Source: Podarcis erhardii
Taxonomy: Eukaryota
Direction: 5' to 3' (one strand)
Assembly: GCA_964252035.1 (NCBI GenBank)
Contig: OZ176214.1
Length of the DNA: 64,000 nucleotides
Every line of letters starts with the position of its first letter. Position 1 is the stretch's first letter. Below, piece by piece: positions 1,525-64,000 of this stretch. The notes below the pieces were generated by a model. The model ran no database searches, had not been told where the DNA came from, and worked only from the letters and a program-made list of their open reading frames with translations. Both the position numbers and the translations under genes were made by a program.

Positions 1525-4943
<3,419 letters not shown>

Positions 4944-23715: not shown

Positions 23716-24099
23716 CACATGCACCCAAAGGTATTGAAATCAGACGACAGCAATAATAAACAAGAACTAAAATGCCACATCGGAATACAACGGCACTTCC
23801 CACCTCCCGAGCTCCAGCCACCCGCCTTTTCCGCCCTCGTCCCTCCTGCCCTCTGCCTCCCCCTCGGAATCCTGCCCTTCTTCACCCCCGTTTCATTCCT
23901 CCTTTTTACCCTCAGGCCCCCAGGCTCCCTGAGTTCCCGTTGCTCCTCTGTCATTTAGGATTTATTCATTATTCTTGAGGTAACGATCATATTTATTTTA
24001 TTATTTTTCAAGATTACCATATAGATATATGAACACATATAAAAACAGAACTGTTTCCAGTTATCTTCGTTCCCTGCCTCCTCGTCCACCTCCCTCAGC

Positions 24100-24277
24100 C
24101 ACAGCTGTCAACTTTCAGATTTGAAAATAAGGGATCAGCAGCCTCGAAAATAAGGGATCAGCAGCCTCACCTGTCCTGGGGACAGGCTACGGGATCTCTA
24201 ACAATCCGGGACAGCAGCGGGAAACGGCACTGGAATAAGAGGATTTGCCGCAAAAAAAGGGAAGGTTGACAGCTATG
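24100..24277. mobile_element. hAT-type MITE, same family, 178 bp
   Basis: TIR cacagctgtcaac/gttgacagctatg; perfect 8-bp TSD ccctcagc; aligns end to end with 1153..1330. Confidence 0.93.
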
Positions 24278-24358
24278 CCCTCAGCCTCCCCCCGCCCCCC
24301 CCCCCGTGAGGCGCTGGCACCGGAACCCTCGCACTCGCTCCCTCTGCTCGCCGCCTAC

Positions 24359-24560
24359 CTGCGCCTTCCTCGCCTTCTGCTCCTTGCCTCGACCTCCTCA
24401 GACGTGTCCCTTCTTCGCCCGGCGAGCGGAGGCGCCACCTCACTGGCCAGCATCGAGCGAGCGTCACCCGCCCTCCCGCCTCCCTCTCCCAGAAACCAGC
24501 TTCTCATTGGTCCCCCTCCCTTTCCGTCAAACATAAGAGCCCCGGCGCTAAAATCACGGC
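24359..24560 (-). other. SLC31A1: Probable SLC31A1 exon 1 (5' UTR); 5' end not determinable
   Basis: Donor GCGCAG|gtaggc at 24359/24358 at the CpG-island edge; the head-to-head SLC31A1/FKBP15 layout with a non-coding first exon is known from mammals. TSS is a guess. Confidence 0.65.
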
Positions 24561-24798
24561 AGCGGCTCGCTAGCGCCCCCGTGGACGCGTTTCTTTCTTC
24601 CGCCTGGAAGTTTGGGCCGCTTGGTGACCGGTAAATGCTTGGCCGTGATCACGTGCCGCCGGCCGCTTTGGCTTGCTAGTTTCGCTTCCGCAGCGCAGCG
24701 CTTGCGCCATGGCCGAGAAGTTGCAGCCGCGCACTTTGCGGCTCTCGCCTCCCGGCTCGGGCTTAGCCGAGGGGCGCGGGGAGCGAGGGGCCGTCAGG

Positions 24799-24854
24799 AT
24801 GTTGGGGGACATGGATGAAGAAGAAGACGACGCCTTCCAGCTTCCGACGGGAGG
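24799..24854 (+). CDS. FKBP15: FKBP15 exon 1 (MLGDMDEEEDDAFQLPTGG)
   Basis: 56 nt, GG|gtgaga, phase 2. Confidence 0.93.
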
Positions 24855-26993: not shown

Positions 26994-27024
<31 letters not shown>

Positions 27025-30000: not shown

Positions 30001-33000
30001 GCATAAATTATGCATAAAGATTGAACATAAAAATAAAAAGTTGACCTGTGCAGAAGGTAAGAGTCGCACTTTGGCCCCTGATCCCACCCACAACTAGTAT
30101 GTGGCCCCTGAAAGGTTGCCCACAGGGGAATGAGGTCCTTTGTCTGAAAAAGTTTCTCATCCCCTACTTTAGTTTAGAGGGGCCATGGGAAGAGAGCCTG
30201 TGAGATACAGGAAAATCCTATCTTGGCACTGCTGAAGTCCCAGATTACTTAAGGCATTTCCGTACTCCATGCAGTACTTGTCAGTTTAATCCCTTTCGAC
30301 CTGTGGAACTTGCACTTCGGCAAGGGCCATTGGTGTACCATCTGTCACTAGGGAGTCATTTCTTTTAGTGTGGCAGCACCCAAACTGTGGAACTCCCTGC
30401 CTGTTGACATTAGGCAGGCACTATCACTGCTCTTCTAGATGCCTGCTGAAAACTCTTCTGTTTTAACAAGCCTCTCCGGGCACATGGTTGGATTCCTGTT
30501 CTTAAATTGGTTTTAGATGTTTTGTTATGCTTTTAGATGTTTTTAACAGTTTCTCTATTTTTATTTAAGTTTTTTATATATATCACACACTTGTTTGCTG
30601 CTATGGCAAGGGGCGTGTGATGTATAAAGAAATAAATGTTTGAGGGTCCTGTCAACTCCCAATTCCTCTTTTACTTCCTCTTCTTTAGTTTGCTCTCCCT
30701 GCCTCCAAGTGGAACTGAGTAGGCACGTGGGTGGGGTGAGCTGGATCTGTGTCATCCCAGAATGTCACTCTCCCCAGAAGGAGAAGCCAAGCTCACAATC
30801 TCTGTTCCGCTCACTTCTTTTGGGAGCCCCTCTAACATGCATGTTGCCACTCATGGTTTTTCTCCAGCTGGAATCCTATAAGAACTGCTTAGGGATGATA
30901 CGGGATAGATTTTCGTATCTTTCACAAGGTCATGCAGCCATTCCAGAGGATTGCTGTTGTGCAAACGCAGAATTGCCTTTGGAAACCTTAGCTGTTTAAT
31001 TCACCCCCCACTGCCCACGCCTTACTTTGCTGATGCTTCAGGATGGAAAAGAGAGGGGAGGGGTAATGACACGAGAAAACAGCAGCCAACATTGAATGGG
31101 TGGGAGCTGGAGAACCGACTGGGGCGCCTGAACAGCGATGTCAGACCTACAGCGAACAGAGTACCTTTGGCAGGCAGTCCACGGGTTTGTTTCATCTGGA
31201 CCAGCTGTTTGGGGTGCTGTCAGGCATTTAAAATGGGCACTTCACCCCTTGGATATTTTTGCTTGCTGTTCAGTAAAGCATGGAGTTTGGGGCTAAGTCT
31301 GGAAATTTAATGTTTGAAGATACTTGGCCTTAGTGTTTGTTCGTTTGTTTTAATCTGCAAGTTTCTAGCTCTCAGGAGTGTAGGGAAGTGGGCTAGGATG
31401 TGTGGTAACTGGTAAGTTTCAGCTACCAGAACAACCCTGAGATGAGATACTTCTGAATGTCTGTAGGGAAAACTACTTCTGTTCAGCAACGTTTATTCCC
31501 TCTCCCCACATTCCTGGCTGTGAATCTCCCTGTGTCGGGAAAGGGTAAACTGCAAGGGCAGGGCTTGTATCCTTGCAATAATGGATACCTTTAAATTTTT
31601 CTTTTGTTTACTAGGTTCTATAAAAGCCTGGGTGCACTAATTTGGCAGCAGTCTTTTCAGTTTTAGGGACTTTGTAGTTTAGACAAAAAGCAAGTAAGAG
31701 ATAATATGATAGAAGTTTATCAAATTAGGCATGGCATGGAGAAAGTGGATAGGGAACAGTTTCTCTCCCTCTTGTGAACATCCGATGAAGCTGAATGTTG
31801 GAAGACCTTCAGGAAAGGCAAAAGAAAGTACTTTCTCACACCATGCACAGTTAAACTACAGAACTCTCCTGCAGGAGGCAGGAATGGCCACCAACTTGGG
31901 TGACTTTAAAAGAGGATTAGAAAAATTCAGAGAGGAGAAGGCTAGCTATGCTCACCACGTTGGTGGCAGCAGGGCTTCTGAACAACTGTTGCTGGAAACC
32001 TCAGGAGGGGAGAGTCCTCTTGTGCTTGGGTTCTGTTGGCTACTGTAAGAACAGAATGCTGGACTCGCTGGGCCTTTGGCCAGATCCTGCAGGCTTTTCT
32101 TTTGTTCTTAAGAGAGGTTATAGAAACTTGATAAGAGAAAGAAGGGATTGTCTCCAACTAAGTTCTGCTTAGAGAAGACCCACAATGTGTCTACTCCTTT
32201 AGGTAAAGGGGCCCCTGACCATTAGGTCCAGTCGTGACCGACTCTGGGGTTGCGGCGCTCATCTCGCTTTATTGGCCGAGGGAGCCGGCGTACAGGTTCC
32301 AGGTCATGTGGCCAGCATCCTAATCACTGACAGGATTCTAGTTTTTGAATCCATTACTCTCTGGTCTTTGGGGAAGGCTGCAACATAATCGCCAACTTGC
32401 AGTGAAACATGAGCATCTTTGTGCTTGCAGATACATGTCTTGTTCTGTTCCTACCCACTTGCCTCTCTCTGTGAATGAAGTGAATGGTTACTTTTCTCTC
32501 TGCCCAGGACCAGGCTGGCCTCTCTCTTTGGACAGGATCAGACAGCTACAGAATCTGGAAATGTGCTCTTCCAATACATGCCACCCAAGCAGCCTAAAAA
32601 AGGTCAACTAGCTACTGGTAAGTAAACTGTTCACAATGCCTAGGAACATAAGACGAGCCCTTGTGGACCAGGCCAGTGACCCATCTAGTCCAACCTTTGG
32701 CTCTGAAGCCCCACAGAATCAACTGGGTTGGTCTGTGGCAACTCCCGGGTAGTGCTGGGGAGAGACCCCTGACCTGGGGCTCCAGAAAGGTGACAGTCTT
32801 CTGGATTCACCACACTGAGGTAGATGGACCCAGTGGTTTGACACCATACAAGGCAATTTCCTGTTTTTCATTAATCTGAGCAACTGGCTTGGTCCCAAGA
32901 CAAGGGAGCTAACTTGGCCTGATGTTTGCAAGCAATGCTCTGTTTGCGACAGAGCACTTAACCTTCTCATGTGCTGCTCCAGCTGCAGGTCTGCCCACCC

Positions 33001-36000: not shown

Positions 36001-39000
36001 AGAGGTAACAAGTAGATGACATTCTGCCCTCTGTCCTACTGCAGCTAACATCCCTTGGGGTAGCCCTCCACCCGAAATCCTATAGCATTTTTCCATTTCT
36101 AAACATGACACACTACAGACGTTGATGTTTGTGTGTGTGTGCTCAGAGTAGACTCACTGAAATTAATGCACCAAAGTTCATCATGTCCATCAATTTTCAT
36201 GGGTCTGCTCTGAGTAAGGCTAACATTGGGACACAACCCAAAGTCTTTAGCAAGACCCATCAGGAAGAAAGTTGTTTTGAGCAGAGGCTGTCTGCTGCTC
36301 AGAATTCCACTTTCTCCTTTCTCTTTCCGCAGGTGCAGCCCAACAACTACTGCACATTTTATGATGATCAGAGGCAGAATTGGTCCATCATGTTTGAATC
36401 AGAAATGGCGGCTGTGGACTTCAGCAAACAGGTGCCAGAGGCGTGCATTGCATTGTGGGGTGGGGGGGGTGGCTGACCTGCAGACACTGAACTAGTGTTC
36501 GCGGGAGCTCAGCTCTCTTGCATCAGTCGCCAGATGCTTTCTCTGCCAACCACTAAGAAGCATCCAGGGAGGGCAAGGAATGGTGGTGTAGCCAGTTGGG
36601 GCCTTTTCAGGCCCCTGGGGTCTTCAGCCAGTGCTGCGCTGGGCCAGATTGCATAGGTGCGGGTGACAATGCAGGCTAATAACACAAAGGGCTTGGTTCT
36701 TCTTCTTCACAGCTGTGCATTGCCAAGTATAACAGCATCCGTTCTCCTGACACAGTGCTGTGCCAGGATCTTGTTCTCGGAGACGGCCAAGCTGTGGCGA
36801 CTGGAGATGTCCTGGAGATCACTTTTACAGGCTGGCTGTTCCAGAACGGTAGTCTTGGGCAGGTGAGACCTGGCAGAGGGGGTGTCTGGGGATGATGGGG
36901 GTCGAAGTCTCTACCAGCACTGCATAGCCACAGCTTTCCCACTCCTGGTTTATAGATTGCATACAGCCCTTTTCTTCCACAACCCCATCCTTTTGCCTTT
37001 CAATAACATTGCAAGGAAATGAAACAGGAGAGGCACTTGGTGAGGCTCACCCAGCTTGCTTGACAGCTCAATGTGCATTTCAACTTGACCTTTGCTCACT
37101 GAGGCTTTAATGAGCTCTAGCCAGATTGTTTCTATAGAAAAAAGGCTTTTTCATGGCATTTGCATTGGTTGCTCTCCAGAGGTGGGGCCTTGCCCAGCCT
37201 TGCCGCCCTTTCTCAACTGGGGGTGCCAGGGAGGGAACCCAGGACCTTCTTCCTGGGAAGCACATGCTGTTAGGCCCTGAGCTACACCTGTCTCCAAGGT
37301 GTAGATCCTATTTCTCAAACTCATTTTACCCAATCTGCAACATGGGAGGCACTGCTAGGTAGGGGATTCAACATGGAAAGCTGCCTTGCACTGCATCAGG
37401 CCACTGGTCTAGGTTGGCATCGCCCACATTGACTGGCAGTAGCTCTCCAGGCTTCCAAGCAAAATCCTTTCCCTGACCTTACTTGGAGATGCCAGGGTTG
37501 AACCTGGAACCCTTTGCCTGCAAAACAGGTGCTGTGTCCCTGAGCTGTGCCCCGTCCTTCAATACTCATTGCTGTTGGCTCAGCAGTGGGAGTAGCGGAA
37601 CATGAACCTATTATCTTCTGCATTAAAAGTAATTTCACCCCATTGACCTTCCACTTTTGGAACAGGTTTTTGACTCGAATGTAAATAAAGAGAAGTTGCT
37701 CCGGCTGAAGCTAGGCTCTGGCAAAGTCATCAAGGTAAGATGGCGCTACCTTCCCACCGCAGTGCAAGGTTTTATGTTTTGATTTTTTTAAATAATATTT
37801 ATTAACATTTTAAAAACTGCAAAAGAAAGACAAAGAATTAAACAAAACAAAACAATACAAAAACAAAAACAAAAACACCACACAACACAACACCAATCCC
37901 CAAACATTAAATTAACAAAACCACACAAACACAATTTAAAAAACATCTAATAAGTTCAGTATCTTAACTTTCATTTACTTGTTTCATCAACCTCCTCGCA
38001 CCTCCCTTTTTGTATTCCACTTTAATTAACTGTTTCAGCAATTCCTTTCCATCTTCCTCTGTTTTCTGTCCTGTAATTTATCTCGACATGTTCTAACCTT
38101 ATTTTTCCCTTTAATATATAATTGTCTTAACATATTTTAACTTTATTTTCCCTTTAATACTCTTGTACTTAATTCCTTGTAACATTTCTACTAAAGCTAT
38201 ATAGCTCCTTTCCAACATTTTTCTAAAACTCATTAATTTTACAATATTTTTATAAATAGTCTTTAAACTTTTTCCAATCTTCTTCCACTGACTCTTCTCC
38301 CTGGTCCCGGATTCTGCCAGTCATATCCGCCAATTCCCTATAGTCCATCAACCTGGTGATCTTCTGTCCGATGCTCTTAACTCTTTTCCAAGTCCCTTCT
38401 GCGAGTCTTCTTCATATTTATACATGAACTTTACTTTGTCTTCCGTTTTCCTTCCTTTGAGGCTATAGAGTAGATCTCGGGGAAACTCCCACCTAAAGAT
38501 GATTTTATTCCTTCTCGACAGGGCAACCAAATCTCCGTAATTGGATCTAAGATCCGAAAGGTATTTCAGGACATCTTTCAGAATTTCCACTCTTGACTGT
38601 TGTTCTTCTAAGTTCCTCTGGTAGTTCCAACAGTCTCTTATTTTGTTCTTCTCTTTTTTCCCTCCTCTTCCAAGTCCGAGAGCCCTCACAATTTTAATCT
38701 CTTCTTGGCCCAAGTCCCAGTCCCAAAAGTCATCAAATTCCTGTGTAAAAAAATCTATCAAACTTTCCTTCTCCAGTTCAGGTAGGGCTCTGATCCTTGA
38801 AATCTGATTTTCTTTAAATTCAATCATAGCAGGCATCAACTTATGGTCATCAAATTGCATCTGTATGGCTGGGACTTTCTCTCTCTCCAATTGTGTTACT
38901 TTAGGTTCAACGGCAATAACTTTCTCCCTAGCCTTCTCCGCAGTTTGCTATGCCAAAGTAGATTCTTGTGTCAGTTTCTGACCCAAATTGTCAATTTTGG

Positions 39001-42000
39001 TAGTTACCAGATCCACCTTTTTGTGGAGCTGTTCCAGTGAGTCACTTATCTTACATAATACAACCACTAAGGCCTCTTCTGTCAACATTCTTAACCGATT
39101 CAAGGCCCCCAGAATCTCACAGGTTTTTATCTTGCAGCTGGAAATCCCCCCAGCTCAACTCTTGAAAGTTTCAAAAGCTTCCTCTAGAGGGAAACAGTTC
39201 CTCTAGAGGGAAACGGTTTCTATTTATATTAGTCCTTTTAAACTCAATTCAAACAATAAAGTTAGTTTCAATTTTCTGTTACTTTTACTCCTTTTTAAAC
39301 GCAGACAGAGACTATGGAAACAATGTATTCCTCTTATTTGACTAACTGTCAGTGAACGTTCTAATCACGGTCAGTCCTGTTGGCAGCCCGTTTCCAGGAT
39401 CGGAGCGGTGGTATATTAACTCTGTTCGCTCTCTCCTGCAGGTATACTCAATCCAAAACTTTCCCCCCTCTTCTCCTGCCACCAAGGGGGGTTTAGTATT
39501 TTTACTGATGGAAATTTAGTCCTTTAAGATAGGCTTTCAGAGACTTCAGCTTGCATCCTCATTGCTTCAATCTATTTACAAAAGGGGAAGGTGGACTTCC
39601 TGTTTTAGACCTCCCCGTTTCGGCACCAAATTAAGACGTTTAAAAATCCAATTCTCCGCTCTACTCACAGGTAGTTACTTTAAGATCAAATTGTCCACAG
39701 GAAAAAGTCAGTGCTCTCCGGCAACAGCTATGCGGCTTCACTCCGTGGAAGAAGCAGTCAATTCAAAGCACCGCGCCGCTCACCCCATGTTGCTCCGGAT
39801 CCCCGAAACCGGGTTTCCCCGCGAGTAGGGAAGGCGCAAAAGGTGCCAGCCGAATCCCATGTTCACAGGCTTCACCTGCCTGTGATTTCTAGTGGGTCTC
39901 CGCCTTCACCGTGGCGGCCATACCCGGATTCCTACGAAGCAAATTCCTCCCGATCAGAGGAATTCCGCCATTACCGGAGGCACTAACCCGGAAGTCCCCT
40001 GTTTTTAAGCTCAAACCCTTTTTGAGCTCAAACCCTGATCAAATGGCTTCCTCAAGAACAGCAGGCAGGTAGCTGTCCCAGCTTGTCTACGCTTGCCAGG
40101 ATCTGCTGGAGTGGGAGGCCCAAACAGGGTCCCTCGATCCCTGCAAAATTCCTGATCCAGCCCTACTGGTCAGTCAGGCTTGCCCTTTCTTTACAGGAGG
40201 GGTGAGGAACCTCAGGCCCAGCAGGGACTGAAACTGGCCCTCAGGATTCACCCCAGGCCATGCCCCTCGCTAAGCCTGCTCTGTGGGCTGGACCAAAACA
40301 GTCCTGGACCTCCAATGTTGCCTCTTGCTGTCCTGGATGAGAGACAGAGGGGGGGAGTGTGAGTGGGTGTCTAAAGTAGCCTATTGTACAAAGGTAAAAA
40401 TTACATTCGTTGCCCCTCCCACTTTCCCCTCTAGCCCCGCCCACTCCTGGCATGCTCCTCCCCACCAAATAGGTTTCCCCAGAGGGAATGGTTTTCATCC
40501 CTGCTTTAAACTACAGTACTGTCCACAAGAGTGCAAGAGAACTGTCAGTATTCCTGTGCCCTGCTCTCAACCAGCCTTTACCAGCCTGACAAACACACAC
40601 ACAGATCCTGTGGACTCCAACTCCCATCAGTCCCAGCCAGCGCCTGCTGATTGGAGTTGGAGTCCAAGGTATCTGGATGACGTCAGTTGGCGAAGGCTGT
40701 GTGGTTCTGGCACTTAGCGTAGGCGGTCACCCAAACTTGTTTTTTGCATGGTTCTCCATTTCTGGAACTTGAAGGGCTGGGAAGATGGGATGATTGGCAT
40801 GAAGAGAGGAGGCAGGCGGTTCCTCCTCATCCCGCCAGCATTGGCTTACGGGTCTTCGGGAGAAGCTGAACGCATTCCTCCGGACTCAACCCTGGCCTTT
40901 GAGGTGCAAGTCAAACGGGTGAGTGTGTCTTCCTCCCAATGTGTTAGCAACCAAGAGAACCTTGGAAGGTTGTTGGGTGGTCGGTCTACTGCCTAGATAA
41001 GGTTCTACAAATGGAGGCAGTGGTTGCCTTGACCAGACTCCATGGTGCCCCTCTTTTGCTCCCTTAGGTGAGATTTGCAAAGGGCGCTGACTCCGCCGGA
41101 CAGAGCCTGGGCCCCAGGGACTCCCTCACACCTTCACCAGCGCCACAATCAGAAAGCCCCGCTACAGACCCAGCCTGGCTGACTCCTCCTACACCTGCTC
41201 CAAAGCCAGGGTGAGAAATAAATTGAGGGTGCCCTTAGCTTTTAAGCCTTCCATTCTCCCAGGTGTCACATCCTAACTCTGCATAACCTCAGCTGCATAA
41301 CTCAGACCCCATCTGCACTGTACCACCTTGAGATCTACGGATGAAGTCCGGTATACAAATTCAATAAATCATAGTAAATCATATGTTCCAAACAGCACCA
41401 TGCCACTTTCAACAGCCGTGGCTTCTTCCAAAGAATCCTGAGGGCCACCTTGCCTCATAGGCAACCTGGCAGGGGCCACATTCCAGGGCTGCGCTGGGGC
41501 TCCAGTGGACAGAGCAACAGATGCTGCTCCTGCCTTCTGTGCAGCCAGAAAATACACCATGTGGGGCTTCTTTCTGCACACACCTCTCCCTGTCCAGGGA
41601 AGCAAGATGCACTGTCACAGTTCAAGGACACATTCCAGCCAGGCTAAAGCTCCCTTGGGGAGGTCATGAGGTGGAGTAGGTGAGGGCCTTGCCCGAGGCA
41701 GAGTCTCTTCGTTTGTTAACTCCCTTCCTTCCATACTGCAGGGAGCCAGCTGTGCGTGCCAAATCAAGCTCTATTAGCGAACAACTAGCGGTAAGTCCCC
41801 ATTGGACTCAAATCTTCCTATTGATTGTATAGTTCCTGTTGAATGTGACCAAAGCAATGAGAAGTAACTTGGTCCTCTCACAGAGCACGGATCCTTATTG
41901 GTGAGCATTTTTTGAGAAACTCAGGTTACATTTCCCTGTTGATCCTGTGATATATTTTTTTAAATAAAAGCTCCCACGTAATAAAGATACAGTATTTTTC

Positions 42001-54000: not shown

Positions 54001-57000
54001 TAACAGTCTGGGAATTGTAGCTGGGGGTGGTGGCAGACCGGGGGTCCCACCACCTCTCAGCACCCTTAAGAGAATGTTCCCATTTCCCAGAATGGTTTGT
54101 GGGAAGCTGTGCGTGTTTGACGCATATAGTGCAGATGGCGCTGTACTTAGGCTTAGCTACAACAGTGGATGGAAACAAGGGCATGCACTGTAACTGGCTT
54201 TGTGCCCCACCTCCACAGAACTTCAGAAATCGTCTGATGACATGAAAAGCAGATACCAGGAGGAGAAGCTGAGTGGGAAGAAGTTGGATGAGAAGGTGAC
54301 AGCCCTGGAAGAGGAGCTGGCTGATATCCGCATTAAGAAGGAGAATCTGGAGAAGGTAGTGCCCAGGGGTGGCAAAAGTCATCACCCGAGGCCAGAAGTG
54401 GCTCCCTGGAAAACTCTCTCTGACCCTTAGGATTCTCCCAGTGCCATACCCCTCCCCCTCTCCCCCATCTTTGCACCCTTGATCATTCTTTGCTTCCCTG
54501 GAAGATCTAATAATAATAATTATGATGATAATGATGAAATAATCTATATCCCGCCCATCTGACTGGGCTTCTTCTTTCATTCTTAAATGGAGGATTGAAA
54601 GGGACAAGTGGGGAAATTAACATATGTTGCTCCACCTACCTTTACTCTTAGCAGGCGGCCCCCAAGAGGTCAGTCAGTGGAGTGGAGTCTGTTAGGCAAA
54701 CAGGGCACTTCCCTCACCCAGCCACCACTTGCTTGCCTTCTTCCTTACAGCCAATCAGGATGTGGCTCTGCCTGTCATTGGGCTCCTTGCCTTCTGCCCC
54801 ACCCACCTCAATGGGCAGGAGCCACCTGTCCTTGGAACACCTCTGCTCACTCTGCTGGCTTCTCATGTCTGCCGTAGGTCTCTGCTTACTGTTTATTACA
54901 GGGGCTCCTGAACTGTGGTCTGCGGACCACCACTAGTTAATGCTGGTTTTCTTCTAGCTTTCCCTGCTTAAAACCACAAGAAGCTCAGAGAACGAGAAGC
55001 TGTCACCACAGCAGGAACAGCCAGAGCCTGTGAAAGGCAAGGTCAGTGGGGCTCTCTTAAAACGTCTTGATGGAGGGTCTGCGGTTCTAACGTGTCCCAC
55101 AGGCTTGTTACACATCTGTGCTGTGAGCCAGTGTGATGCTGTGTACTAATGCAGAGACTGAACTGCATTACTGTATATAGAGCTTAGCATTAGCTGAAAA
55201 AGCAACTCATAAATTATATGTTGTCAAAGGCTAGAGGACCCTGAAAAATTCTATGCAGGCAGCTGGGTGGGATTTTACCTTGTATACAATCTGTAGAGAG
55301 AGACTGGACTCCCTGTCCATAGTACAGTGTGAAATGTGGCTTGCCAAATTGGTCCCAAACTTTTGGAAGGGCACCAGGTTGGCAGAGGCAACAGCAGTTA
55401 ACAATACTTTAAAACAGTTTACAGTCTCACAAATAAGGTATCTCCTAAAAATACACACAGATGTGTTCCTCTCTCTGTAACAAACCCTGAAGTGCTCTTG
55501 AAATAAGAAATGTTAAGGAAAGTCGCGGGGCGCAAGCAGTAGAGAGAAATCTTAGTCACATTCAGCAAAAGCAATGGCAAACCACACTTCTGTAACTTCA
55601 ATCGGGAGTTCTTACCTGTTAGTCTGAACAGCACAATTCAATGCCATCCATTGCTTGGCACGTAGATGCTATCCAGATAATGTATGTTCCTTGTAAAATA
55701 AATGAATAAATGAAATCATCACCACATTTGGCTGTCCAGAAACTCTTGAAAGCCCACTGTCCTTGCTGGTGTTGCTTCCCTGCCTTCTGACTCTTTGGCA
55801 TCATCCTGCCCCAGGTGAAGAAGATCATGAACGAGGTCTTCCAGTGCCTGCGGGGCCAGTTCAACTTGGAGGAGTCCTATACCGGCCAGGAGGTCCTGGG
55901 TATCGTCCTGAACGCCATCAAGGTACAGCCCAGGGCAGATGGATCCTGACACTTGAATAAGATGAAATTGAGTGAACTGATCTATCATTTCTCTTCCTTT
56001 TTGTATGGTTCCAAATGTCATGAGTTTGGGTGCCAGAGTTTTGGGTGCAAGATGCCCATAACTACTGGGTTTAGTAAGTGTTAGAATTTAATCACTGCTT
56101 GGAGAGTGAAACTGAAAGTCAGGCGCTTAACAGCTGGACTCAGCTTCCTGTGTTGAGGAGATCGCTTGAGAGGTGGGCCATTAGAGAACTAATAATGAAG
56201 ATGATGATGATGATTTTGTTTATACCCAGCCACTCTGGGTGGCTTCCAACACATATATAAAACATAGTCAAACATTAAACATCTTTAAAAAATGGAACAC
56301 TTCACCAATTTGCAGAGGCCATGCTAACCTCTTTATCGATCCAATTTTAGTATACAGTATGTGCTGCAGACAGAAAGATGGGCCATCAGCAAGACAGACA
56401 CTCTGCCAGCCAGCAGATGGGTGAAGCCCCACCCAGAGCTTTGAGATAGTGAGTTTGAAGAGAGTGCCAAAGTTTTGGTTAGGAGGAAGTTTTAGGATTT
56501 CAGTTGGCTATGGTGTGATCAAAAGAAAAAAGGCTTTCAGTCTGTTAAATGCAGCAAGCTGGAGAGGCAGGATCAGAGCACAATGCAGACTGACAGTTTG
56601 AATTAGAGGTTGCAGCAATGGGAAAAATGGGACTCTCTTGGAGTGTATGCTGGGGGCCCCCTCCATTACAGGCTCAGGCGTAAATAAACTATATATCATT
56701 ATGACACCACAGTCTACACTGTGCCTCATTTCCAAAGGAAACACAGACTAAGTGCCTAGACCCCTGGAATCTTCCACCGGTCAGAGACTGGGGTGGCATT
56801 TAGCCCCATATTTCTAATCATGGGAGCAGCAAAGAGGGTGAAGCCCAGCTCTCTAGAAATAACAGGTTGCATCTAAGGTACTACAAAGTGAAAGTCACTT
56901 AGCTGTGCCTGTGTGGCTGAGTAGGGATTCAAACCCTGGTCTCCTGAGTCCTGGTTAGAGACCAACCATTACACAGTACTTTCATCAGGGGCTGCAGTCT

Positions 57001-59345
57001 TTTTTGTGGCAAATAATCCCCCCTCCCCTCTACTTGTTCCAGACAACAACTCTGCAGCTGCTGGAGAGTCAGGAGGAACAAAGGGGGAGCAGCAGCACCG
57101 AGGAGGAAGAAACTGCGGAAAGGAAGCAGCCAAGTGCCGCACCCCTTTATGGGGATCCCCACAGCAACTCTCTCCGAGAACCAGCACCAGTGGCATCCCC
57201 CGCTCCTTTGGCTAATCTGAAGGAAAGCTCAAGCAGTCCGCCATTCACCACTCTCAAAGGAGCCCAAGACAGACTGCTTTTTGCAGCTCCTGAGGCTCAT
57301 TCTTCGGAAGCACCGGTTGAACAAACTCGTGCAGCCTCTGCTCAAACTGCAAGGCCGCCTCTCAGGCTCTCCGCCAGTATTGAGAAGGAGAGGCCAAGCA
57401 CTCAGGGAGAAATGGACACAATAGACACCGCCATTATGGCACCTCCAAATCCAGCGGCGGATGAGACGGCATCTGCAATGGAGGGGCCCACAAGGGATCC
57501 AGAGGGCAAGGAGGAGAGTGGGGCAAATCAGCACACCGCTGGCCCCACCTCTCAAGCTGCTCTAGCCGACAAGCAGCAGGACCTGGCTGGAGCCTCACAG
57601 CCAAGACCAGCGTCCAGCCCCATGGAAGCAGATTCCAGGTCTGTGGCAGGGCGGGAGGGGGACAGGAACTGTACCCATTATGAGTCTCTTGCCTTTCCGT
57701 GCCTTCCCCCCACCCCCTAATAGCATGGGGTTTCAGGCACAAAGGAAGAGCCTGGCTCCCCCTTGTTGGGTGATAACGCCGAGGCCTGTTGCCTCCCCCC
57801 AACTGCAGCGTCGCCTGGGATTCATTCCTCGGGTCTCCCATCACACTGATGTGGCCCATATCCAGGGACATGAGCACACAGTGAGCAGAATTCAAAACAG
57901 ACGCTCAGCCTTCAGTAGTAACATCTAAACCTAATTTATTGCAAATTAAATCAAACAGAACAGATAAATAAAACATGGCTCCTCTCTCTGTCTTTATTCC
58001 TCGGAGAGAGAGCGGCAAAAAACAAAAGCTATACAGAGCGGAAACAGCATATCTCAACTTCCTCTCACAAGACTCCCACAATCAGTGCTGGAATGTAAAC
58101 AGACATGTGACATGTAGCAATCCCACACACATCTGCAGTACGGGAGGAATGGAATTCTCAACACCCCTCTGCTCCATTCATTGACATCAGTGCTAGCACT
58201 CTCCCACTCCCTCATTTAACCCCCACATCAACCCTATAAGGTAGGCACTACCCAATGAGCTTCAGGACTGAGTAGAGATTTGAACTCTGGTCTCCCAGGG
58301 TTCTGGTCCGTTAACCACTGCATCACTCCCACTCTCCTTTTCCTTCTGTCTTTTTCTCTTGCAGTCTTCTTGAGGACAAGGGTGGTTTCTTCAAAGTTGC
58401 CACTCCCAAGCCATCTGCACTGGGAACTCTGTTGGTAGAAGATGACGACGACGAGGAAGAGGTGGTAAGAGCTTTGAGGGGGTGCAGTGGTGTATGGTGC
58501 CATTTGGGATGGCTTAAGGTGGAAGGCATAGGTAAAGGTATAGGGACCCCTGACCATTAGGTCCAGTCGTGGCCGACTCGGGTTGCGGCGCTCATCTCAC
58601 TTTATTGGCCGAGGGAGCCGGCGTACAGCTTCCGGGTCATGTGGCCAGCATGACAAAGCCGCTTCTGGCAAACCAGAGCAGCGCACGGAAACGCCATTTA
58701 CCTTCCCGCCAGAGCGGTACCTATTTATCTACTTGCATTTTGACATGCTTTCAAACTGCTAGGTTGGCAGGAGCAGGGACCGAGCAACGGGAGCTCACCT
58801 CGTGGTGGGGATTCGAACCGCCAACCTTCTGATTGGCAAGCCCTAGGCTCTGTGGTTTAACCCGCAGCGCCACCCATAGAGGCCCTCAATAGGTGTTTGA
58901 TAAACTAAAGTGGTGGTATTTTGTTACCAGGGCACCACCAATCTTTCCTCTGGCTGTTAGGGGCGCTATATTGTTATGGTTTTGTGGCATGTTCACTTTA
59001 TTAGGGTCAATGTCCACTATTCAATACTAACAATAGCTGGAGCCATAGCCACTGACAGGCAGCAGAGCCAACTACTTCCAGTTTTGTCCTCTTCCTCCCT
59101 GCTGAGTCCCACAAGGGGCAACCTTGCGACTTACTAGGAGGAAGCTAGAGCCCACATCCTTGTCTTCCTTTTCCCGCTTGCCTTGCTGATGGTCCTGTTC
59201 AGCTGGCCACCTGCTCTGCCAAGCAGCGATGACATATCCCTGCCTTTCTTTCTCTCGGTTTCAGAGCCTTAAGGGTCGGCCTCCCCCCACCCCACTCTTT
59301 GATGATGATGACGATGACAACGATGACCTATACCTGCTGGGATGA
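24799..59345 (+). CDS. FKBP15: FK506-binding protein 15 (WAFL), copy 1; 26 coding exons, 3174 nt = 1057 aa + stop (1087 aa from the upstream ATG at 24709)
   Basis: All 26 exons join in frame with GT-AG ends. Recognisable motifs: RLASLFG, PKQPKKGQ, FYDDQRQNWSIMFESE (WH1-like), VFDS/KVIKGWEDGM (FKBP domain), KLISRMAKMGQPMLP, METSMIMSNIQRI, ENERLKQEI, VKKIMN, KGRPPPTPLFDDDD. Confidence 0.96.
24950..25128 (+). repeat. G-rich 18-bp minisatellite, ~10 units (consensus gctgtatgtggggctggg)
   Basis: Units read directly; lies ~95 bp into FKBP15 intron 1. Confidence 0.9.
27450..27615 (+). mobile_element. tRNA-derived squamate SINE (Squam3-like; family name inferred). Other copies at ~16110-16290(-), 26540-26975(+, split by a MITE), 34270-34450(+), 37400-37560(-), 43560-43690(-), 48880-49040
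   Basis: tgctttgcatgcagaaggtcc..gttcaatccc (B-box-like) head and ..ggcagcttcttatgttcct tail repeated across the window. Confidence 0.75.
28520..29040 (+). mobile_element. L1-like LINE 3' end, inserted in a Penelope-like fragment (~28465-29190)
   Basis: IRDQGEESVEEDWRKFKDYL remnant, T-rich 3' UTR, aataaa and A-rich tail; same family as the 3' end of 37781..39999. Confidence 0.8.
30280..30560 (+). mobile_element. L2-type LINE 3' end
   Basis: ..FSVAAPKLWNSLP.. remnant. Confidence 0.7.
31670..31945 (+). mobile_element. CR1-type LINE 3' end
   Basis: gataatatgatagaagtttatcaaatt...ggccaccaacttgggtgactttaaaagaggattag, typical of this tail; a related - strand piece lies at ~52640-52800. Confidence 0.75.
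32202..32318 (+). mobile_element. Sauria SINE, 3'-truncated
   Basis: ggtaaaggggcccctgaccattaggtccagtcg...gccagcat. Confidence 0.9.
32508..32617 (+). CDS. FKBP15: FKBP15 exon 2 (TRLASLFGQDQ...PKQPKKGQLAT)
   Basis: cccag|G ... G|gtaagt; 110 nt. Confidence 0.95.
32989..33124 (+). CDS. FKBP15: FKBP15 exon 3 (Ala-rich...FATAVHAYL)
   Basis: ctgcag| ... TT|gtgagt; 136 nt; alternative in-frame acceptor at 32983. Confidence 0.9.
33908..33977 (+). CDS. FKBP15: FKBP15 exon 4 (TNGKYVKHGKYGAAVVGSNATKE)
   Basis: ttccag| ... GAG|gtaaga; 70 nt. Confidence 0.95.
35271..35345 (+). CDS. FKBP15: FKBP15 exon 5 (YRVLLYISKQQQIATARIDAWFVFT)
   Basis: atccag| ... ACG|gtaagc; 75 nt. Confidence 0.95.
36143..36215. 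repeat. Short hairpin repeat (ctcagagtagac.cactgaaattaat..attaatttca..ggtct.ctctgag); other copies at ~2775, 9437, 18320
   Basis: Recurrent imperfect palindrome. Confidence 0.6.
36333..36431 (+). CDS. FKBP15: FKBP15 exon 6 (VQPNNYCTFYDDQRQNWSIMFESE...KQ)
   Basis: ccgcag| ... CAG|gtgcca; 99 nt. Confidence 0.96.
36713..36862 (+). CDS. FKBP15: FKBP15 exon 7 (LCIAKYNS...ITFTGWLFQNGSLGQ)
   Basis: tcacag| ... CAG|gtgaga; 150 nt. Confidence 0.95.
37666..37734 (+). CDS. FKBP15: FKBP15 exon 8 (VFDSNVNKEKLLRLKLGSGKVIK)
   Basis: gaacag| ... AAG|gtaaga; 69 nt. Confidence 0.96.
37781..39999 (-). mobile_element. Internally deleted L1-like element (5' UTR + ORF1 + last codons of ORF2 + 3' UTR)
   Basis: CpG-rich 5' end (ggggacttccgg..); ORF1-like frame ~39088->38348 with one TAG at 38948-38950; LMDYRELADMTGRIRDQGEESVEEDWKKFKDYL follows directly; candidate TSD tgtttt at 37775-37780 and 40000-40005. 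Confidence 0.82.
40775..40918 (+). CDS. FKBP15: FKBP15 exon 9 (GWEDGMIGMKRGG...LAFEVQVKR)
   Basis: ttgaag| ... CGG|gtgagt; 144 nt. Confidence 0.95.
41068..41210 (+). CDS. FKBP15: FKBP15 exon 10 (VRFAKGADS...PKP)
   Basis: ccttag| ... GG|gtgaga; 143 nt. Confidence 0.92.
41742..41790 (+). CDS. FKBP15: FKBP15 exon 11 (EPAVRAKSSSISEQLA)
   Basis: ctgcag|G ... GCG|gtaagt; 49 nt. Confidence 0.93.
41990..42155. mobile_element. Short pogo-type MITE related to 12804..13416, in opposite orientation
   Basis: TIR cagtatttttccgt/acggaaaaatacgg. Confidence 0.78.
42254..42295. repeat. (AAT)n microsatellite
   Basis: Read directly. Confidence 0.97.
43362..43481 (+). CDS. FKBP15: FKBP15 exon 12 (NPDVTKVKLISRMAKMGQPMLP...EVE)
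   Basis: ggacag| ... GAG|gtgtgt; 120 nt. Confidence 0.92.
43700..44050. mobile_element. Penelope-like element fragment
   Basis: Ends in gtatctgaagaagtgtgcatgcac..ttagttggtctttaaggtgctactggaagg, the same terminus as at 18.5 and 29.1 kb. Confidence 0.75.
44413..44494 (+). CDS. FKBP15: FKBP15 exon 13 (EPHAIQEFSNF...WATQ)
   Basis: cttcag| ... G|gtaaaa; 82 nt; poorly conserved, chosen because it supplies the required phase 0 to phase 1 bridge. Confidence 0.72.
45031..45091. repeat. (GAT)n microsatellite
   Basis: Read directly. Confidence 0.97.
45143..45228 (+). CDS. FKBP15: FKBP15 exon 14 (APHPAVSGLQVP...QNCQ)
   Basis: tcctag| ... CAG|gtaagg; 86 nt; resembles human APQPSVTGLQ. Confidence 0.82.
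46701..46791 (+). CDS. FKBP15: FKBP15 exon 15 (PYAGMPYAYPQ...PFQ)
   Basis: tctcag| ... G|gtatgt; 91 nt. Confidence 0.92.
47586..47801 (+). mobile_element. Tc1/mariner-type MITE
   Basis: TIR cagtggtacctcgggtt/aacccaaggtaccactg; TA on the left, CA on the right. Confidence 0.85.
47880..47989 (+). CDS. FKBP15: FKBP15 exon 16 (AGDLGSFLLTETRQQNTEIRLAVGKVADKMDQLSVK)
   Basis: tcacag|cag NAGNAG acceptor ... AAG|gtaata; 110 or 107 nt. Confidence 0.93.
48008..48322 (+). mobile_element. Sauria SINE, near full length with small internal deletions
   Basis: Aligns to 58531..58874. Confidence 0.93.
49194..49301 (+). CDS. FKBP15: FKBP15 exon 17 (LEELRKQ...METSMIMSNIQRILQ)
   Basis: ttgcag| ... CAG|gtaaag; 108 nt. 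Confidence 0.95.
50375..50469 (+). CDS. FKBP15: FKBP15 exon 18 (ENERLKQEIVEK...RNQR)
   Basis: ccacag| ... CG|gtgagg; 95 nt. Confidence 0.95.
50855..50957 (+). CDS. FKBP15: FKBP15 exon 19 (YVEQSNLL...RVLHAEQEK)
   Basis: ccccag|C ... AAG|gtaagc; 103 nt. Confidence 0.95.
51137..51356 (-). mobile_element. Tc1/mariner-type MITE, inverted copy of 47586..47801
   Basis: TA on both sides; the reverse complement begins cagtggtacctcgggttaagtacttaattcgttc. Confidence 0.87.
53023..53194 (+). CDS. FKBP15: FKBP15 exon 20 (VRVTKELAEATAQ...AQLA)
   Basis: ttgcag| ... G|gtaagg; 172 nt. Confidence 0.94.
54219..54355 (+). CDS. FKBP15: FKBP15 exon 21 (ELQKSSDD...LEEELADIRIKKENLEK)
   Basis: ccacag| ... AAG|gtagtg; 137 nt. 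Confidence 0.94.
54958..55041 (+). CDS. FKBP15: FKBP15 exon 22 (LSLLKTTRSSENEKLSPQQEQPEPVKGK)
   Basis: ttttcttctag| ... AAG|gtcagt; 84 nt, phase 0/0, stop-free; weakly conserved. Confidence 0.72.
55815..55922 (+). CDS. FKBP15: FKBP15 exon 23 (VKKIMNEVFQCLRGQF...NAIK)
   Basis: ccccag| ... AAG|gtacag; 108 nt. Confidence 0.95.
57043..57638 (+). CDS. FKBP15: FKBP15 exon 24, large low-complexity acidic/Pro-rich exon (TTTLQLLESQEE...EADS)
   Basis: ttccag| ... AG|gtctgt; 596 nt inside ORF 57004..57720; phase matches the next exon. Confidence 0.88.
58365..58464 (+). CDS. FKBP15: FKBP15 exon 25 (LLEDKGGFFKVAT...DDDDEEEV)
   Basis: ttgcag|T ... GTG|gtaaga; 100 nt. Confidence 0.9.
58531..58874 (+). 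mobile_element. Sauria SINE, full length
   Basis: ggtaaagg..gggacccctgaccattaggtccagtcg ... gggattcgaaccgcc ... cagcgccacc; matches the lacertid-type consensus as I recall it. Confidence 0.94.
59265..59345 (+). CDS. FKBP15: FKBP15 last exon (SLKGRPPPTPLFDDDDDDNDDLYLLG*)
   Basis: tttcag| acceptor; TGA at 59343-59345. Confidence 0.95.
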   Translation, partial: SLKGRPPPTPLFDDDDDDNDDLYLLG

Positions 59346-59763: not shown

Positions 59764-59785
59764 AATAAAGTGCAATTAAAATAAA
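59764..59785 (+). terminator. Probable FKBP15 polyadenylation signals
   Basis: AATAAA at 59764 and 59780, ATTAAA between them, followed by TG/T-rich sequence (tctgttgtctcagttctttc). Confidence 0.7.
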
Positions 59786-60170: not shown

Positions 60171-63100
60171 AAAGGGGGGAGGGGTATTTGTGTGATTAAA
60201 CCCACTCACCATTTATAGGGCACCTTAGGTGCTTCACGTACATACACCTGATACAGTAAGAATTAACACCAGTCCTGTGAGGGAGGCCAGTATTAGTAAT
60301 CTCTAATTAGTAATTGCAGATGGGGAGGCTGAAACAGAGAGTGGCTTGCCCAAAGGTTGAATGATATGCAGAAGGTGATACCTTGGTCCTCATCTCTGAT
60401 ACAAAACTACAAAATATATACAAAAGTATCAAATGTGGTGACAGTAATAATAATGCAGCAAAACAACACCACCACAAACTGGCTTATAAGTATAAAACCA
60501 AATTTACTAGAATTTGAATAACTGGAATAGAGCTAGACTTGTAACCATTCAAGCAACAAACATACTAAGGTGCCATGTGCAAAACAAAGCCTGGAGATAC
60601 TGTAAACATGGAGTGGATAAATGTACAACTGAATCTTAACAAGTTGCATGTGCAATAAACGTTATACAAACTGGATAAGTGAACCGTTCAACAAGTAGCG
60701 TAAGTCCAATAACAGAATGGCAACCCTGTGCCGCCACAATGGCAAGGGTAGCACACTGGAGAACATGAAAAAGTTTTTCAAAGCTGTTCTTCAAAGATTG
60801 AACTGGATGAGATATTCTTCAATAGGTCTTGAGTTGGAAACACAAAGCCGTTTGCATGGATCAATCACAGGAAGGCAAATCAAAGCCACCACCCTGGTGA
60901 GAAAAACGCAAGTGGGCAAAAGGAGACCTGTTCTCCTTGCTACGCGCTTCATCAGTCCGAAAAGGCAGTCATAGAAAACGGTTTGCTCAGGATAAAGTAT
61001 TCACAGGCACAGCATGTTGTGAAACGGGTCGCTCTTCCCCATTTCCTGTTTACAGTGATTGGGCATGCTCCACTGATGCAGAGCACTTTCCCTCGACCCA
61101 CCACTGAGCGCACCACGCCGGAAGTCTCATATATAAAAACATAAAACATTACTTTTTTAAAAAACTTCCCTATACAGGATTGCCTTCAGATGGCTCAGGG
61201 GACGGATAACTCCATACCCTCCAACCTTTCTCCATTGAAAATAGGGACATCCTAAGGAAAAGTGGGACACTCCAAGATCAAATCATAAACCAGGATGGCA
61301 TCTTTAAATCGGGAACATCCCTGGTAAATATGGACACTTGGAGGGTCTGCAACCAGTGCCATTTTTCTAGAAAAAGATGTGCCAGAACTCACCGTGAACA
61401 CCTCCCTCATTCTCTTAGAATGGCAATGGTACCCAGAGCTAGTGCTGTGCACTCTGGGGCAGGGCTAGCTGCCTGTAGGGATGGGGTTAGCCACCTGCAG
61501 GGACAAGGTGTCCCCGGGGGTGGCGGCGAGCGTCCCAGGAAGGCATGGCGAGTGTCCCATGGAAGCGGCGCAGTGATGTTCCCCCACAGGGATGACACCC
61601 AGGGCAGCCCGCACCCACATACCCCTTCCTCTGCCAGTGATCGCGCCCACCTGAGATGTGCTAGAACGGAGTTCCAGCAAGTTCCAGCTGAAAAAAGCCC
61701 TGCTTCCAACATTATAATTATCGTACCAAAGAGCTTCGTAGCTTCTCTCTTTCACACACCCCACCTGTCACACACTCCAAACTTACATAACAGCAAAGGC
61801 TATTCAGCAGGGTTGCCAGTTCAGACCCTTCCATTTCAGGTGTAACAGGGAGTCCTTGGAGCACCCCACAATTACCTAACCTTGATTCCCATAGGTTCAG
61901 GTTGAGCGTCACAAGCAAAAGACTTTAGCCAGGTGATAGAAACAAAACAGCAGCCAGTAGGCCTGATCTTTCTTGTTGCAACAAGACTTCCCACTGCCAC
62001 AAAGACAAAGCAGCCAGAAGCCCCCATCAATAGTTACATCTGTATTTTAAAGTTTCCCATAATACATCTCAGGATGCATCACCAAGACATCATAGATCTG
62101 TCACAGAAAAGGTGTGGTCTCGGGTAGAACCTGAGATCCAGGCATACCCCTGTCACGCAAATATAGTCTTTGACACTTACTCCCATCCCAGTACAAAGGA
62201 AAGTATTTACAGCTCCTTGGTCCCTGAGTCAAATCAAACACACCCCTCTGTCTTGTCCGGCTTCATCCCACTATAGGATGGATAGGCATTGTGATTGAGG
62301 TGGTTGGATATCACTGACCCATGACTCCTTGGGAAGGCCCTGCAGAGGTGTCTGTACATCTCGGGGATTATGGTGGGCTCACTCACCCCTCCCCTTATAC
62401 CTCACTTCCCGGGGTCCTAAATGCCATTGAAACGGAGAAGATTGATACAATGAGTGATTTCCGAGGAATTTCTAAAGTTTTGCCATTGAGCCAGTGCATA
62501 AATACATTTATCAGTGAATCGTTCCCAACCCCTTCTTTCCTGCTCCCAAGAGCTGGGACTCATGATTTTTCAGCTTTTAAATGGAATTATGTATTGACAA
62601 GACACTGGCTTTTTCTGCCATCTATTAATTCCAACTCTGGGGAGTCCAACTCTCCCCCCACCCCCACTTTTTCTATGTCATGCTGGAGGAATATGTTGAC
62701 CTGACTGATATTTTGGGAAATGGTTTGCCCATTTGCCCTCTATGCAATTGGACACCTCGCCATCCATAATACCAAACTTGGCATGAGGGTTCCCAGGGTG
62801 GGGCGGCAGACCTTATTGCTGTTTGTATGTTGGGTGCCATTTTGAATCAAGATGGCAGACTGAAATTTCAGTTTGGCATGACTTTGTCCATTTTGTGGCA
62901 CATGGTAAGCCACAAGTAGAGATATGATCGGTAGATTCAGCTCAAGAGTGCTCAAGGTGTGTGTGGGGGGGGTCTTCATTGATGTTTGGATGTTGGGTGC
63001 CATTGTGAATCCTGGACAGTGCCTGTGTGTGGGGTATTAGTGTGGGGGGTGTTAGAGGAGAGGTAGTACTTTGGTGGAGGACACACCATGCTCCTTCTGT

Positions 63101-63174
63101 GGTAGTTGGTTTTCAGCGAGCCAGCCAGCTAGGATTTGAATGAGTACAAAGAATTTGAATCTACTGTTTCTGGT

Positions 63175-63486
63175 AACAGTGATACCATCCTCGCAAAAAC
63201 GGACTGGCAAGCAAAAATGATAGAAGATCTACAACTTGCCAGAACAACAGGGAGAATAGGAGGAAATTCAATACCAAAAGTTAATCGAGATCGGATAATA
63301 TTTAAGGAAGATTTTAAAAATTAGTGACGACGTTAATCTCCTGACAGACCTAGAATGAATCTTGGAATATGGAGAATGTACATAGTAAAAGTTCATGGAT
63401 ATAACACGAGAAGGCTAAATAAGAAGAAAGAAATGTGTTTTGCCAGACAAAGCGTAAAGAGCACAATGAGAAGAATCGGAAGTTAG
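63175..63486 (+). mobile_element. L1-like 3' fragment at the duplication junction
   Basis: ..TDWQAKMIEDLQLARTTGRI..FKEDFK* resembles the ORF2 C-terminus seen in the other L1 ends in this window. Confidence 0.55.
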
Positions 63487-64000
63487 CTACCTGCGCCTTC
63501 CTCGCCTTCTGCTCCTTCCCTCCATCTCCTCAGACGCGTCCCTTCTTCGCCCGGCGAGCGGAGGCGCCACCTCATTGGCCAGCCTCGAGCGAGCGTCACC
63601 CGCCCTCCCGCCTCCCTCTCCCAGAAACCAGCTTCCCATTGGTCCAGCCGTGTCCCCCTCCCTTTCCGTCAAACTTAAGAGTCCCGCCGCCAAATTCACG
63701 GCTGCGGCAGCAGCTGATCGCTCGTGTTGCCCTGGACGCGTTTCTTCCCTCCGCGTGCAAGTTTGGCCCGTTTGGGGACCGCGAATGCCGCCGGCCGCTT
63801 TGGCTTGCTAGTCTCGCTTCCGCAGCGCAGCGCTTGCGCCATGGCCGAGAAGTTGCAGCCGCGCACTTTGCGGCTCTCGCCTCCCGGCTCGGGCTTAGCC
63901 GAGGGGCGCGGGGAGCGAGGGGCCGTCAGGATGTTGGGGGACATGGATGAAGAAGAAGACGACGCCTTCCAGCTTCCGACGGGAGGGTGAGAATGCGGCG
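63487..64000. promoter_or_regulatory. Second CpG island: duplicate of the SLC31A1/FKBP15 bidirectional promoter (paralog of 24356..24868)
   Basis: Direct alignment to 24356-24868 in the same orientation; runs off the window end. Confidence 0.95.
63931..63986 (+). CDS. FKBP15: FKBP15 exon 1, second tandem copy (partial; gene continues beyond the window)
   Basis: Identical to 24799..24854 including the GG|gtgaga donor; upstream in-frame ATG at 63841 also identical. Whether the rest of the gene is intact cannot be seen. Confidence 0.85.

Follow-up and report, generated by a model that had tools for sequence, protein, structure and literature searches.

The stretch of Podarcis erhardii DNA analyzed here, 64,000 nucleotides that we call the window, carries a complete FKBP15 gene and, beyond its 3′ end, a second copy of the promoter and first exon with which that gene begins. 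In mammals, FKBP15 is a single-copy gene; SLC31A1 (CTR1) lies head to head with it, and SLC31A2 follows. The question is what the promoter copy at positions 63487 to 64000 represents. We consider it highly probable that it opens the second unit in a head-to-tail Podarcis FKBP15 array, supplying that unit's promoter and first exon.

The gene identities given in a preliminary description of this DNA (CTR1 and FKBP15) are borne out by the features of the SLC31A1 open reading frames and by the FKBP_C and PF23649 domains of the second gene. The features of the first copy of the locus are as follows.

1525 to 5042, minus strand: SLC31A1 (CTR1) coding exons, recognized by open reading frame translations with a Met/His-rich N terminus, transmembrane segments, and the C-terminal sequence ...DITEHCH
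21221 to 21950, plus strand: SLC31A1 intron-1 segment at the left breakpoint of the duplicated unit, found after the FKBP15 3′ flank in every Podarcis unit
24355 to 24868, plus strand: proximal (original-position) promoter block, with SLC31A1 exon 1 plus the FKBP15 5′ untranslated region (5′UTR) and exon 1; 98.05% identical to the P. lilfordi proximal promoter
24709 to 59345, plus strand: FKBP15 copy 1, complete gene with FKBP_C and PF23649, mapped exon by exon with tblastn to proteins P0278 (1097 aa) and P0259 (1064 aa)
60176 to 63132, plus strand: ancestral FKBP15 3′ flank, the right end of the duplicated unit, orthologous to Lacerta agilis up to position 48497 of the L. agilis sequence (L002)

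The SLC31A1 coding open reading frames are at 4722 to 5042, 3046 to 3501, and 1525 to 1734 (minus strand), and the noncoding exon 1 of this gene, also on the minus strand, ends at 24359 with a GT donor at 24358 to 24357. The coding part of FKBP15 copy 1 exon 1 is 24799 to 24854, with the donor at 24855 to 24856 and an upstream in-frame ATG at 24709. The FKBP_C exon lies near 40.8 kb and the PF23649 exons at 53.0 and 54.2 kb, and both diagnostic domains are encoded (PF00254, E = 1e-14; PF23649, E = 6e-11 and 1e-10). The 1008 mapped codons contain zero stops, and every exon of the 1097-aa proximal protein of P. lilfordi, as well as of L. agilis FKBP15, is present in the gene; AATAAA signals follow at 59764 to 59769 and 59780 to 59785. 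The upstream ATG (MAEKLQPRTL...; 24709 and 63841) is absent in L. agilis (near L002 position 9990), which has GACCCGG for GCCATGG and a 28-bp deletion downstream, and the conserved FKBP15 start is the second ATG (MLGDMDEE...). The 3.7 kb that separate FKBP15 from the distal promoter show no trace of SLC31A2, and the open reading frames within 60.7 to 62.7 kb (85, 171, and 127 aa) have no Pfam match. SLC31A2 was likewise not seen in any of the loci examined in the relatives (P. lilfordi, P. muralis, P. raffonei, and L. agilis).

Several other features of this region were recorded. A block of ~2.2 kb in an FKBP15 intron (37777 to 40001) is missing at the orthologous site in P. lilfordi unit A (the units are described below), P. 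raffonei, and L. agilis; it carries a minus-strand open reading frame of 180 aa (38348 to 38890) with no Pfam match, has diverged inverted relatives at 28520 to 29037 and in P. lilfordi, and probably represents a lineage-specific insertion of a transposable element. Short direct repeats (matches of ~52 to 65 bp at 83 to 90%) cluster in SLC31A1 intron 1 at 12640 to 13420, together with long spurious open reading frames on both strands. One copy of a 178-bp direct repeat (1153 to 1330 and 24100 to 24277, 89.9% identity), probably an interspersed element, lies near the SLC31A1 3′ end, and the other shortly before the proximal promoter block.

The features at the distal end of the window are as follows.

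63130 to 63174, plus strand: remnant of the SLC31A1 intron-1 piece, 45 bp, the equivalent of 21906 to 21950
63175 to 63486, plus strand: distal-unit-specific segment of 312 bp, which replaces proximal 21951 to 24354
63487 to 64000, plus strand: distal bidirectional CpG-island promoter block, 87.4% identical to 24355 to 24868 and cut by the window end
63491 to 63700, minus strand: SLC31A1 (CTR1) exon-1-like orphan segment, in which homology to the proximal copy starts 4 intron bases in (GCGCAG/GTAG); the upper limit of ~63700 is approximate, as the transcription start site is not known
63931 to 63986, plus strand: coding part of FKBP15 exon 1 of the second unit, MLGDMDEEEDDAFQLPTG-G, with the splice donor GT at 63987 to 63988

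The preliminary description had reported a direct repeat with copies ~39.1 kb apart, the second of them ~4.1 kb after the stop codon of a complete FKBP15. Both observations hold: alignment with MAFFT and self-BLAST pair 63487 to 64000 with 24355 to 24868, both on the plus strand, with 87.4% identity across 533 alignment columns, and the distal block starts 4,142 bp 3′ of the FKBP15 stop (TGA, 59343 to 59345). This is the top-scoring repeat within the 64-kb window (self-BLAST E values of 0 to 9e-163), and its two copies lie in direct orientation on one contig, as expected of a head-to-tail segmental duplication. The repeat extends through the final base of the window, which lies 14 bp into FKBP15 intron 1, and the second unit is thus represented in the window by exon 1 only.

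Divergence is distributed very unevenly along the repeat. The 5′ part (63487 to 63785) has 29 substitutions in 280 aligned sites and indels of 10, 9, and 19 bp, whereas only 1 of 215 sites is substituted (Fisher P = 5.5e-7 for the contrast) in the 3′ part (63786 to 64000), made up of the FKBP15 5′UTR, exon 1, and the 14 bases of intron that follow. The binomial probability of finding ≤1 difference in the 3′ part at the 5′ rate is 1.6e-9. Residues 1 to 48 of P0007 (a P. lilfordi protein described below) and of P0278 match 63841 to 63987 and 24709 to 24855 equally well by tblastn, and the upstream in-frame ATG at 63841 is the start position in the P. lilfordi gene models. On the minus strand, the donor of the orphan SLC31A1 exon-1-like segment is intact (exon end at 63491, GT at 63490 to 63489), and within the unit there are no SLC31A1 coding exons downstream of it.

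A second collinear match detected by BLAST pairs 63130 to 63174 with 21906 to 21950 (45 bp, 97.8% identity) and lies 312 bp upstream of the distal block. In a sensitive BLAST comparison of 59.8 to 63.5 kb with 14 to 26 kb, this 45-bp piece was the only match beyond the promoter block. The 312 bp at 63175 to 63486 have no counterpart in the proximal region by BLAST or in L. agilis; in every P. lilfordi and P. muralis distal unit, they are contiguous with the promoter (the query 63175 to 64000 aligned end to end).

Since the block lies at the window edge and its last 187 bp (63814 to 64000) are identical to the proximal copy, it could be asked whether a false duplication or a chimeric join in the assembly has placed a second promoter haplotype after FKBP15. 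This is extremely improbable. Over the first 300 bp, the two copies differ by 10% and by three indels, far more than alleles would, and the window contains zero N bases and no gaps. The distal copy is ~96% identical to the distal-type promoters of the relatives over 826 bp, including the 312 bp that are missing from the proximal region. The same arrangement of 3′ flank and promoter is found in the chromosome-level assemblies of three other species, and because it is thus present in four independently assembled genomes, we regard an assembly artifact as excluded.

The closest full-length relative, found in a HMMER library search with the conserved N-terminal FKBP15 exon, is P0007, a P. lilfordi "FK506-binding protein 15-like" protein. 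Several distinct FKBP15-like genes are annotated in P. lilfordi (CAI5794223 to 227); P. muralis has several FKBP15-like entries (XP_077778478 to 498, including LOC114589174 and LOC114589411), and one FKBP15-like protein cluster was found in P. raffonei (XP_053229930 to 942). None of the Podarcis FKBP15-like entries is identical to the window FKBP15 product. Outside Podarcis, the plain name "FKBP15" is used for L. agilis, Zootoca vivipara, and all other reptiles and birds among the matches listed. It is because non-Podarcis squamates, birds, turtles, and crocodilians among these matches carry this plain name that the array appears to be confined to the wall lizards.

We merged three overlapping P. 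lilfordi loci, whose overlaps are identical, into a sequence of 147,302 bp with no N. Window positions 14412 to 64000 are collinear with the first 49 kb of this merged stretch (OX395140.1), ending in its second unit, with 98 to 99% identity in single-copy DNA. The merged sequence holds five promoter copies, and thus at least five units. One of the five promoters is of the proximal type (98.05% identical to the window proximal block), and the other four are of the distal type, with ~96% identity to the window distal block over 826 bp and ~85% to the proximal block. Overall, the distal block is 94 to 96% identical to distal-type promoters, of which four are in P. lilfordi and two in P. muralis.

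In those parts of the P. lilfordi and P. muralis sequences that were read, FKBP15 exons 2 onward come after the distal promoters. P. lilfordi unit A is complete (1097 aa) and is the only complete unit there. Units B and D contain exons up to residue 776 and then a large exon truncated at residue 970, with no 3′ end; unit C lacks residues 381 to 776; and unit E begins at the edge of the sequence examined. The starts of B and D resemble each other, as do those of C and E, which is a higher-order repetition. P. muralis has at least two distal-type promoters with gene bodies, and its RefSeq coding sequences begin at distal promoters. The distal units of both species are thus 3′ truncated or internally deleted. 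The collinearity of P. raffonei with the window reaches as far as the junction described below.

Three side observations concern these sequences. The P. lilfordi model CAI5794226.1 (816 aa; L001 positions 10001 to 55858) spans units B and C and is likely a chimeric prediction; overlapping models of 977 aa and 787 aa in P. muralis are like this two-unit model. Part of FKBP15 intron 1 (26124 to 30744) is missing from the distal units of both P. lilfordi and P. muralis. This part is ~98% identical to P. lilfordi unit A, and it serves as an internal single-copy control that shows the extra divergence of multicopy sequence.

The preliminary description had proposed two tandem FKBP15 genes. The tandem duplication is upheld by the junction found in three Podarcis genomes, but the number two is not, as P. 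lilfordi has at least five units and P. muralis several; exactly two copies is more than the window alone can demonstrate. The single-copy locus of L. agilis has the same head-to-head SLC31A1/FKBP15 CpG-island promoter, the same FKBP_C plus PF23649 architecture, and the same 3′ flank; the minus-strand neighbor upstream of its FKBP15 is a Ctr (PF04145) gene. The order there is SLC31A1 (minus strand), one FKBP15, the 3′ flank orthologous to window 60177 to 63132, and then ~900 bp of unrelated sequence. The L. agilis locus differs in that its 3′ flank runs past the breakpoint into this unrelated sequence with no second promoter. In P. lilfordi, P. raffonei, and P. muralis, by contrast, the FKBP15 3′ flank is followed by the SLC31A1 intron-1 piece and then by a promoter copy; the equivalent of 60176 to 63132 recurs after units in P. 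lilfordi and is present in P. raffonei. Based on these comparisons, the array is common to wall lizards (Podarcis) and missing in the sand lizard (L. agilis).

Alignment of the junction region resolves the breakpoint to the base. In Podarcis, the FKBP15 3′ flank ...AAAAAAGGCCTGCT passes directly into TGCTTCCTTCATCAGG... of SLC31A1 intron 1. At the breakpoint base, L. agilis continues with CAGGGGCC..., which is unrelated. The native SLC31A1 intron 1 at window position ~21221 reads ...GGGATGTGCT and then TGCTCCCTTCATCAGG, and the two parents have a 4-bp microhomology, TGCT, in common at the join. The junction is identical to the base between P. lilfordi units A and B, between units B and C, in P. 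raffonei, and in P. muralis. This identity, found twice in P. lilfordi and again in two other species, shows by sequence comparison a single founding event joined at the microhomology, and we infer that later copies arose via homologous unequal exchange. The founding unit would extend from roughly 21221 to just past 63132, which is ~42 kb.

The Podarcis relatives retain the whole 730-bp intron-1 piece at the junction. The window, in contrast, has a private deletion of ~740 bp that removed the junction together with ~50 bp of the flank end and 685 bp from the start of the intron-1 piece. At the former junction, the window has flank up to 63132 and then the 45-bp remnant at 63130 to 63174, and both sides of the junction are therefore still present. 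Because of this private deletion, the array of the window may differ from those of the relatives in further ways.

A promoter and exon 1 could also survive in the P. erhardii genome as a relic that no gene body follows. Compatible with such a relic are the end of the window short of exon 2, the instability of the array in the relatives (with their truncated and deleted units), and the private junction deletion of the window. The relic reading is nonetheless improbable, given that in collinear P. lilfordi the exons behind the equivalent promoter reach residue 970 of P0278 (1097 residues), that the CpG island, ATG, and donor of the distal block are intact, and that its exon 1 has recently been converted (see below). 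We therefore favor the reading of the distal block as the start of a second array unit.

A further claim of the preliminary description was that the copy next to CTR1 is the derived one. In its full form, this alternative has exactly two complete genes, of which the CTR1-side gene is derived and the distal gene is ancestral-like and faces SLC31A2. Consistent with it, window copy 1 lacks a coiled-coil segment of ~104 residues found in non-lacertid squamates (Rhineura FKBP15 residues 731 to 833; missing at window 54358 to 54958), and the proximal promoter has lost 10 bp and 9 bp in two derived deletions when compared with L. agilis. However, the ~104-residue segment likewise has no tblastn match in single-copy L. 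agilis or in the P. lilfordi and P. raffonei proximal copies, and since the segment is equally missing there, its loss is, by this comparison, common to all lacertids sampled and not copy specific. In addition, the proximal unit is the only complete one in P. lilfordi, the distal promoter type, with a 19-bp deletion of its own, is more distant from the L. agilis outgroup than is the proximal type, and there are more than two units in the relatives. We consider this alternative unlikely. The CTR1-side copy is complete and the distal units of the relatives are truncated or deleted, so that the claim of a derived CTR1-side copy is not sustained; judged from these sequences, the CTR1-side copy is the conserved, complete copy.

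The sequence of the array units also indicates their age. In the intron-1 piece, proximal and distal copies differ by 5.4 to 6.2%, compared with 6.6% between the window and L. agilis and 1.4% between the window and its P. lilfordi orthologue. Based on these values, the duplication is old and probably dates from an early point on the Podarcis stem, once this lineage had separated from Lacerta. Within the promoter block, the 299-bp 5′ part places the window proximal copy with P. lilfordi unit A (3 differences) and the window distal copy with P. lilfordi units B to E (8 to 10 differences), while the proximal and distal types are separated by 29 to 37 differences in 280 sites. L. agilis has 19 to 20 differences per 295 sites from the proximal type and 31 to 37 per 295 from the distal type. 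With L. agilis as reference for indel polarity, the derived deletions are those of 10 and 9 bp in the proximal type and that of 19 bp in the distal type. This comparison shows that the two promoter types separated before the species split.

The 215-bp 3′ part varies little within a genome, with 1 difference in the window and 0 to 2 among the five P. lilfordi copies; between the window and P. lilfordi, 4 to 5 sites differ. Three derived states (the G in GCAGCG, an extra GAA codon, and GACGAC) occur in both window copies, whereas neither L. agilis nor any of the five P. lilfordi copies has them. Since the promoter types split before the species did and the window copies nevertheless share derived states, exchange after speciation is required, which indicates that gene conversion (or an equivalent exchange) keeps the FKBP15 5′UTR and exon 1 nearly identical within each genome. 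Both the sharp step in divergence along the repeat and the derived states shared by paralogues, which are the marks of conversion, are observed here, and the boundary of the tract is near 63786/24654. A G-rich minisatellite-like array of GGGGCTGGGGC/TGTATGTG motifs (24900 to 25130, with a period of roughly 45 to 90 bp) lies in FKBP15 intron 1 directly after the conversion tract, and its length varies among units and species.

In multicopy sequence, the window and P. lilfordi are 95.5 to 97% identical, and every unit is about equally close. Window copy 1 cannot be assigned to one P. lilfordi unit by gene-body similarity, because past ~31.5 kb the units are equally close; the synonymous distances from window copy 1 are 0.096 to unit A, 0.069 to unit C, and 0.089 to unit D.

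Is the distal block functional? Its GC content is 0.66 and its CpG observed/expected ratio is 0.99, compared with ratios of 1.01 for the proximal block and 0.26 for the window. The distal block thus has high GC and a CpG observed/expected ratio of >0.6 between divergent first exons, as a bidirectional CpG island does, and both the minus-strand and the plus-strand splice donors are present. That CpG content has been kept despite ~10% divergence argues that the distal island has remained free of germ-line methylation. Distal exon 1 retains an intact ATG, reading frame, and donor, and its equivalent is where the public gene models of P. lilfordi and P. muralis start. Judged by these indirect signs (the CpG content, the intact ATG and donor, and the start of the relatives' gene models at this exon), the distal block still looks like an active promoter and most likely drives a second FKBP15-like transcript.

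The exons of the P. lilfordi distal units are open save for one stop each in B and D. The preliminary description had proposed calculating dN/dS for each copy. When this was done, all pairs, including those with single-copy L. agilis, gave values of 0.44 to 0.73, which give no sign of free decay and at the same time do not separate functional from decaying copies. Because the P. lilfordi and P. muralis distal units are truncated or internally deleted, the second "gene" of the window may encode no canonical FKBP15. The rearranged units are of two types, one without the C-terminal exons and one without the central coiled coil, each behind a CpG-island promoter and a conversion-homogenized exon 1. 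It is a speculative and rather doubtful suggestion that these Podarcis units are expressed as new truncated FKBP15 paralogues with altered endosome or actin-binding roles peculiar to wall lizards, and that the orphan SLC31A1 exons may add antisense or alternative CTR1 transcripts.

The history that we propose for the locus would begin with one nonhomologous join, which the breakpoint sequences show, from ~3.4 kb past the FKBP15 poly(A) site to SLC31A1 intron 1 (window position ~21221) at 4 bp of microhomology. The resulting unit of ~42 kb would contain all of FKBP15 with its 3′ flank, preceded by the CpG-island promoter common to both genes, the noncoding exon 1 of SLC31A1, and a piece of SLC31A1 intron 1. 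Unequal crossing-over would then have multiplied and rearranged the units while the junction was kept in each, as the unit structures of the relatives suggest. The distal promoter type would have diverged from the proximal type before the species split, with conversion homogenizing the 5′UTR and exon 1, as the shared derived states show. The distal block would drive a second FKBP15-like transcript, and the SLC31A1 exon-1 copy would be an orphan by-product of the duplication.

The Podarcis "FK506-binding protein 15-like" loci are like the window in their position beside SLC31A1, in their junction, and in their proximal and distal promoter types; among the P. lilfordi, P. muralis, and P. raffonei loci and the window, only the window has the private deletion of ~740 bp over the junction. 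A full-text literature search found no papers linking FKBP15 with Podarcis, lizards, or duplication. The view in the preliminary description that no account of the duplication was known thus stands for the literature but not for the databases, since GenBank and RefSeq already annotate "FK506-binding protein 15-like" paralogues. These public annotations name genes; the array, the junction, and the gene conversion are not described there.

Tandem segmental duplications that are joined at microhomology and expanded by unequal crossing-over with concerted evolution are well known from the globin, opsin, and amylase arrays. The Podarcis array likewise has head-to-tail units, a single microhomology junction, higher-order repetition, and a conversion tract over exon 1. 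In contrast to those arrays, each Podarcis unit includes one side of a bidirectional promoter pair, so that the first exon of the neighboring gene is left in it as an orphan, and the distal units are rearranged rather than faithful copies.

The kind of feature found here, a tandem segmental duplication shaped by unequal crossing-over and gene conversion, is textbook, and no general principle is changed by it. For work on the genus, it carries a warning about annotation, in that the Podarcis "FKBP15-like" models include chimeric and truncated units, and orthology of the FKBP15 body between Podarcis species is blurred by exchange between paralogues. As a multiunit array that, among the annotated species compared, is confined to Podarcis, it is a clean, datable gene amplification with a base-resolved junction, split promoter types, and an exon-1 conversion tract.
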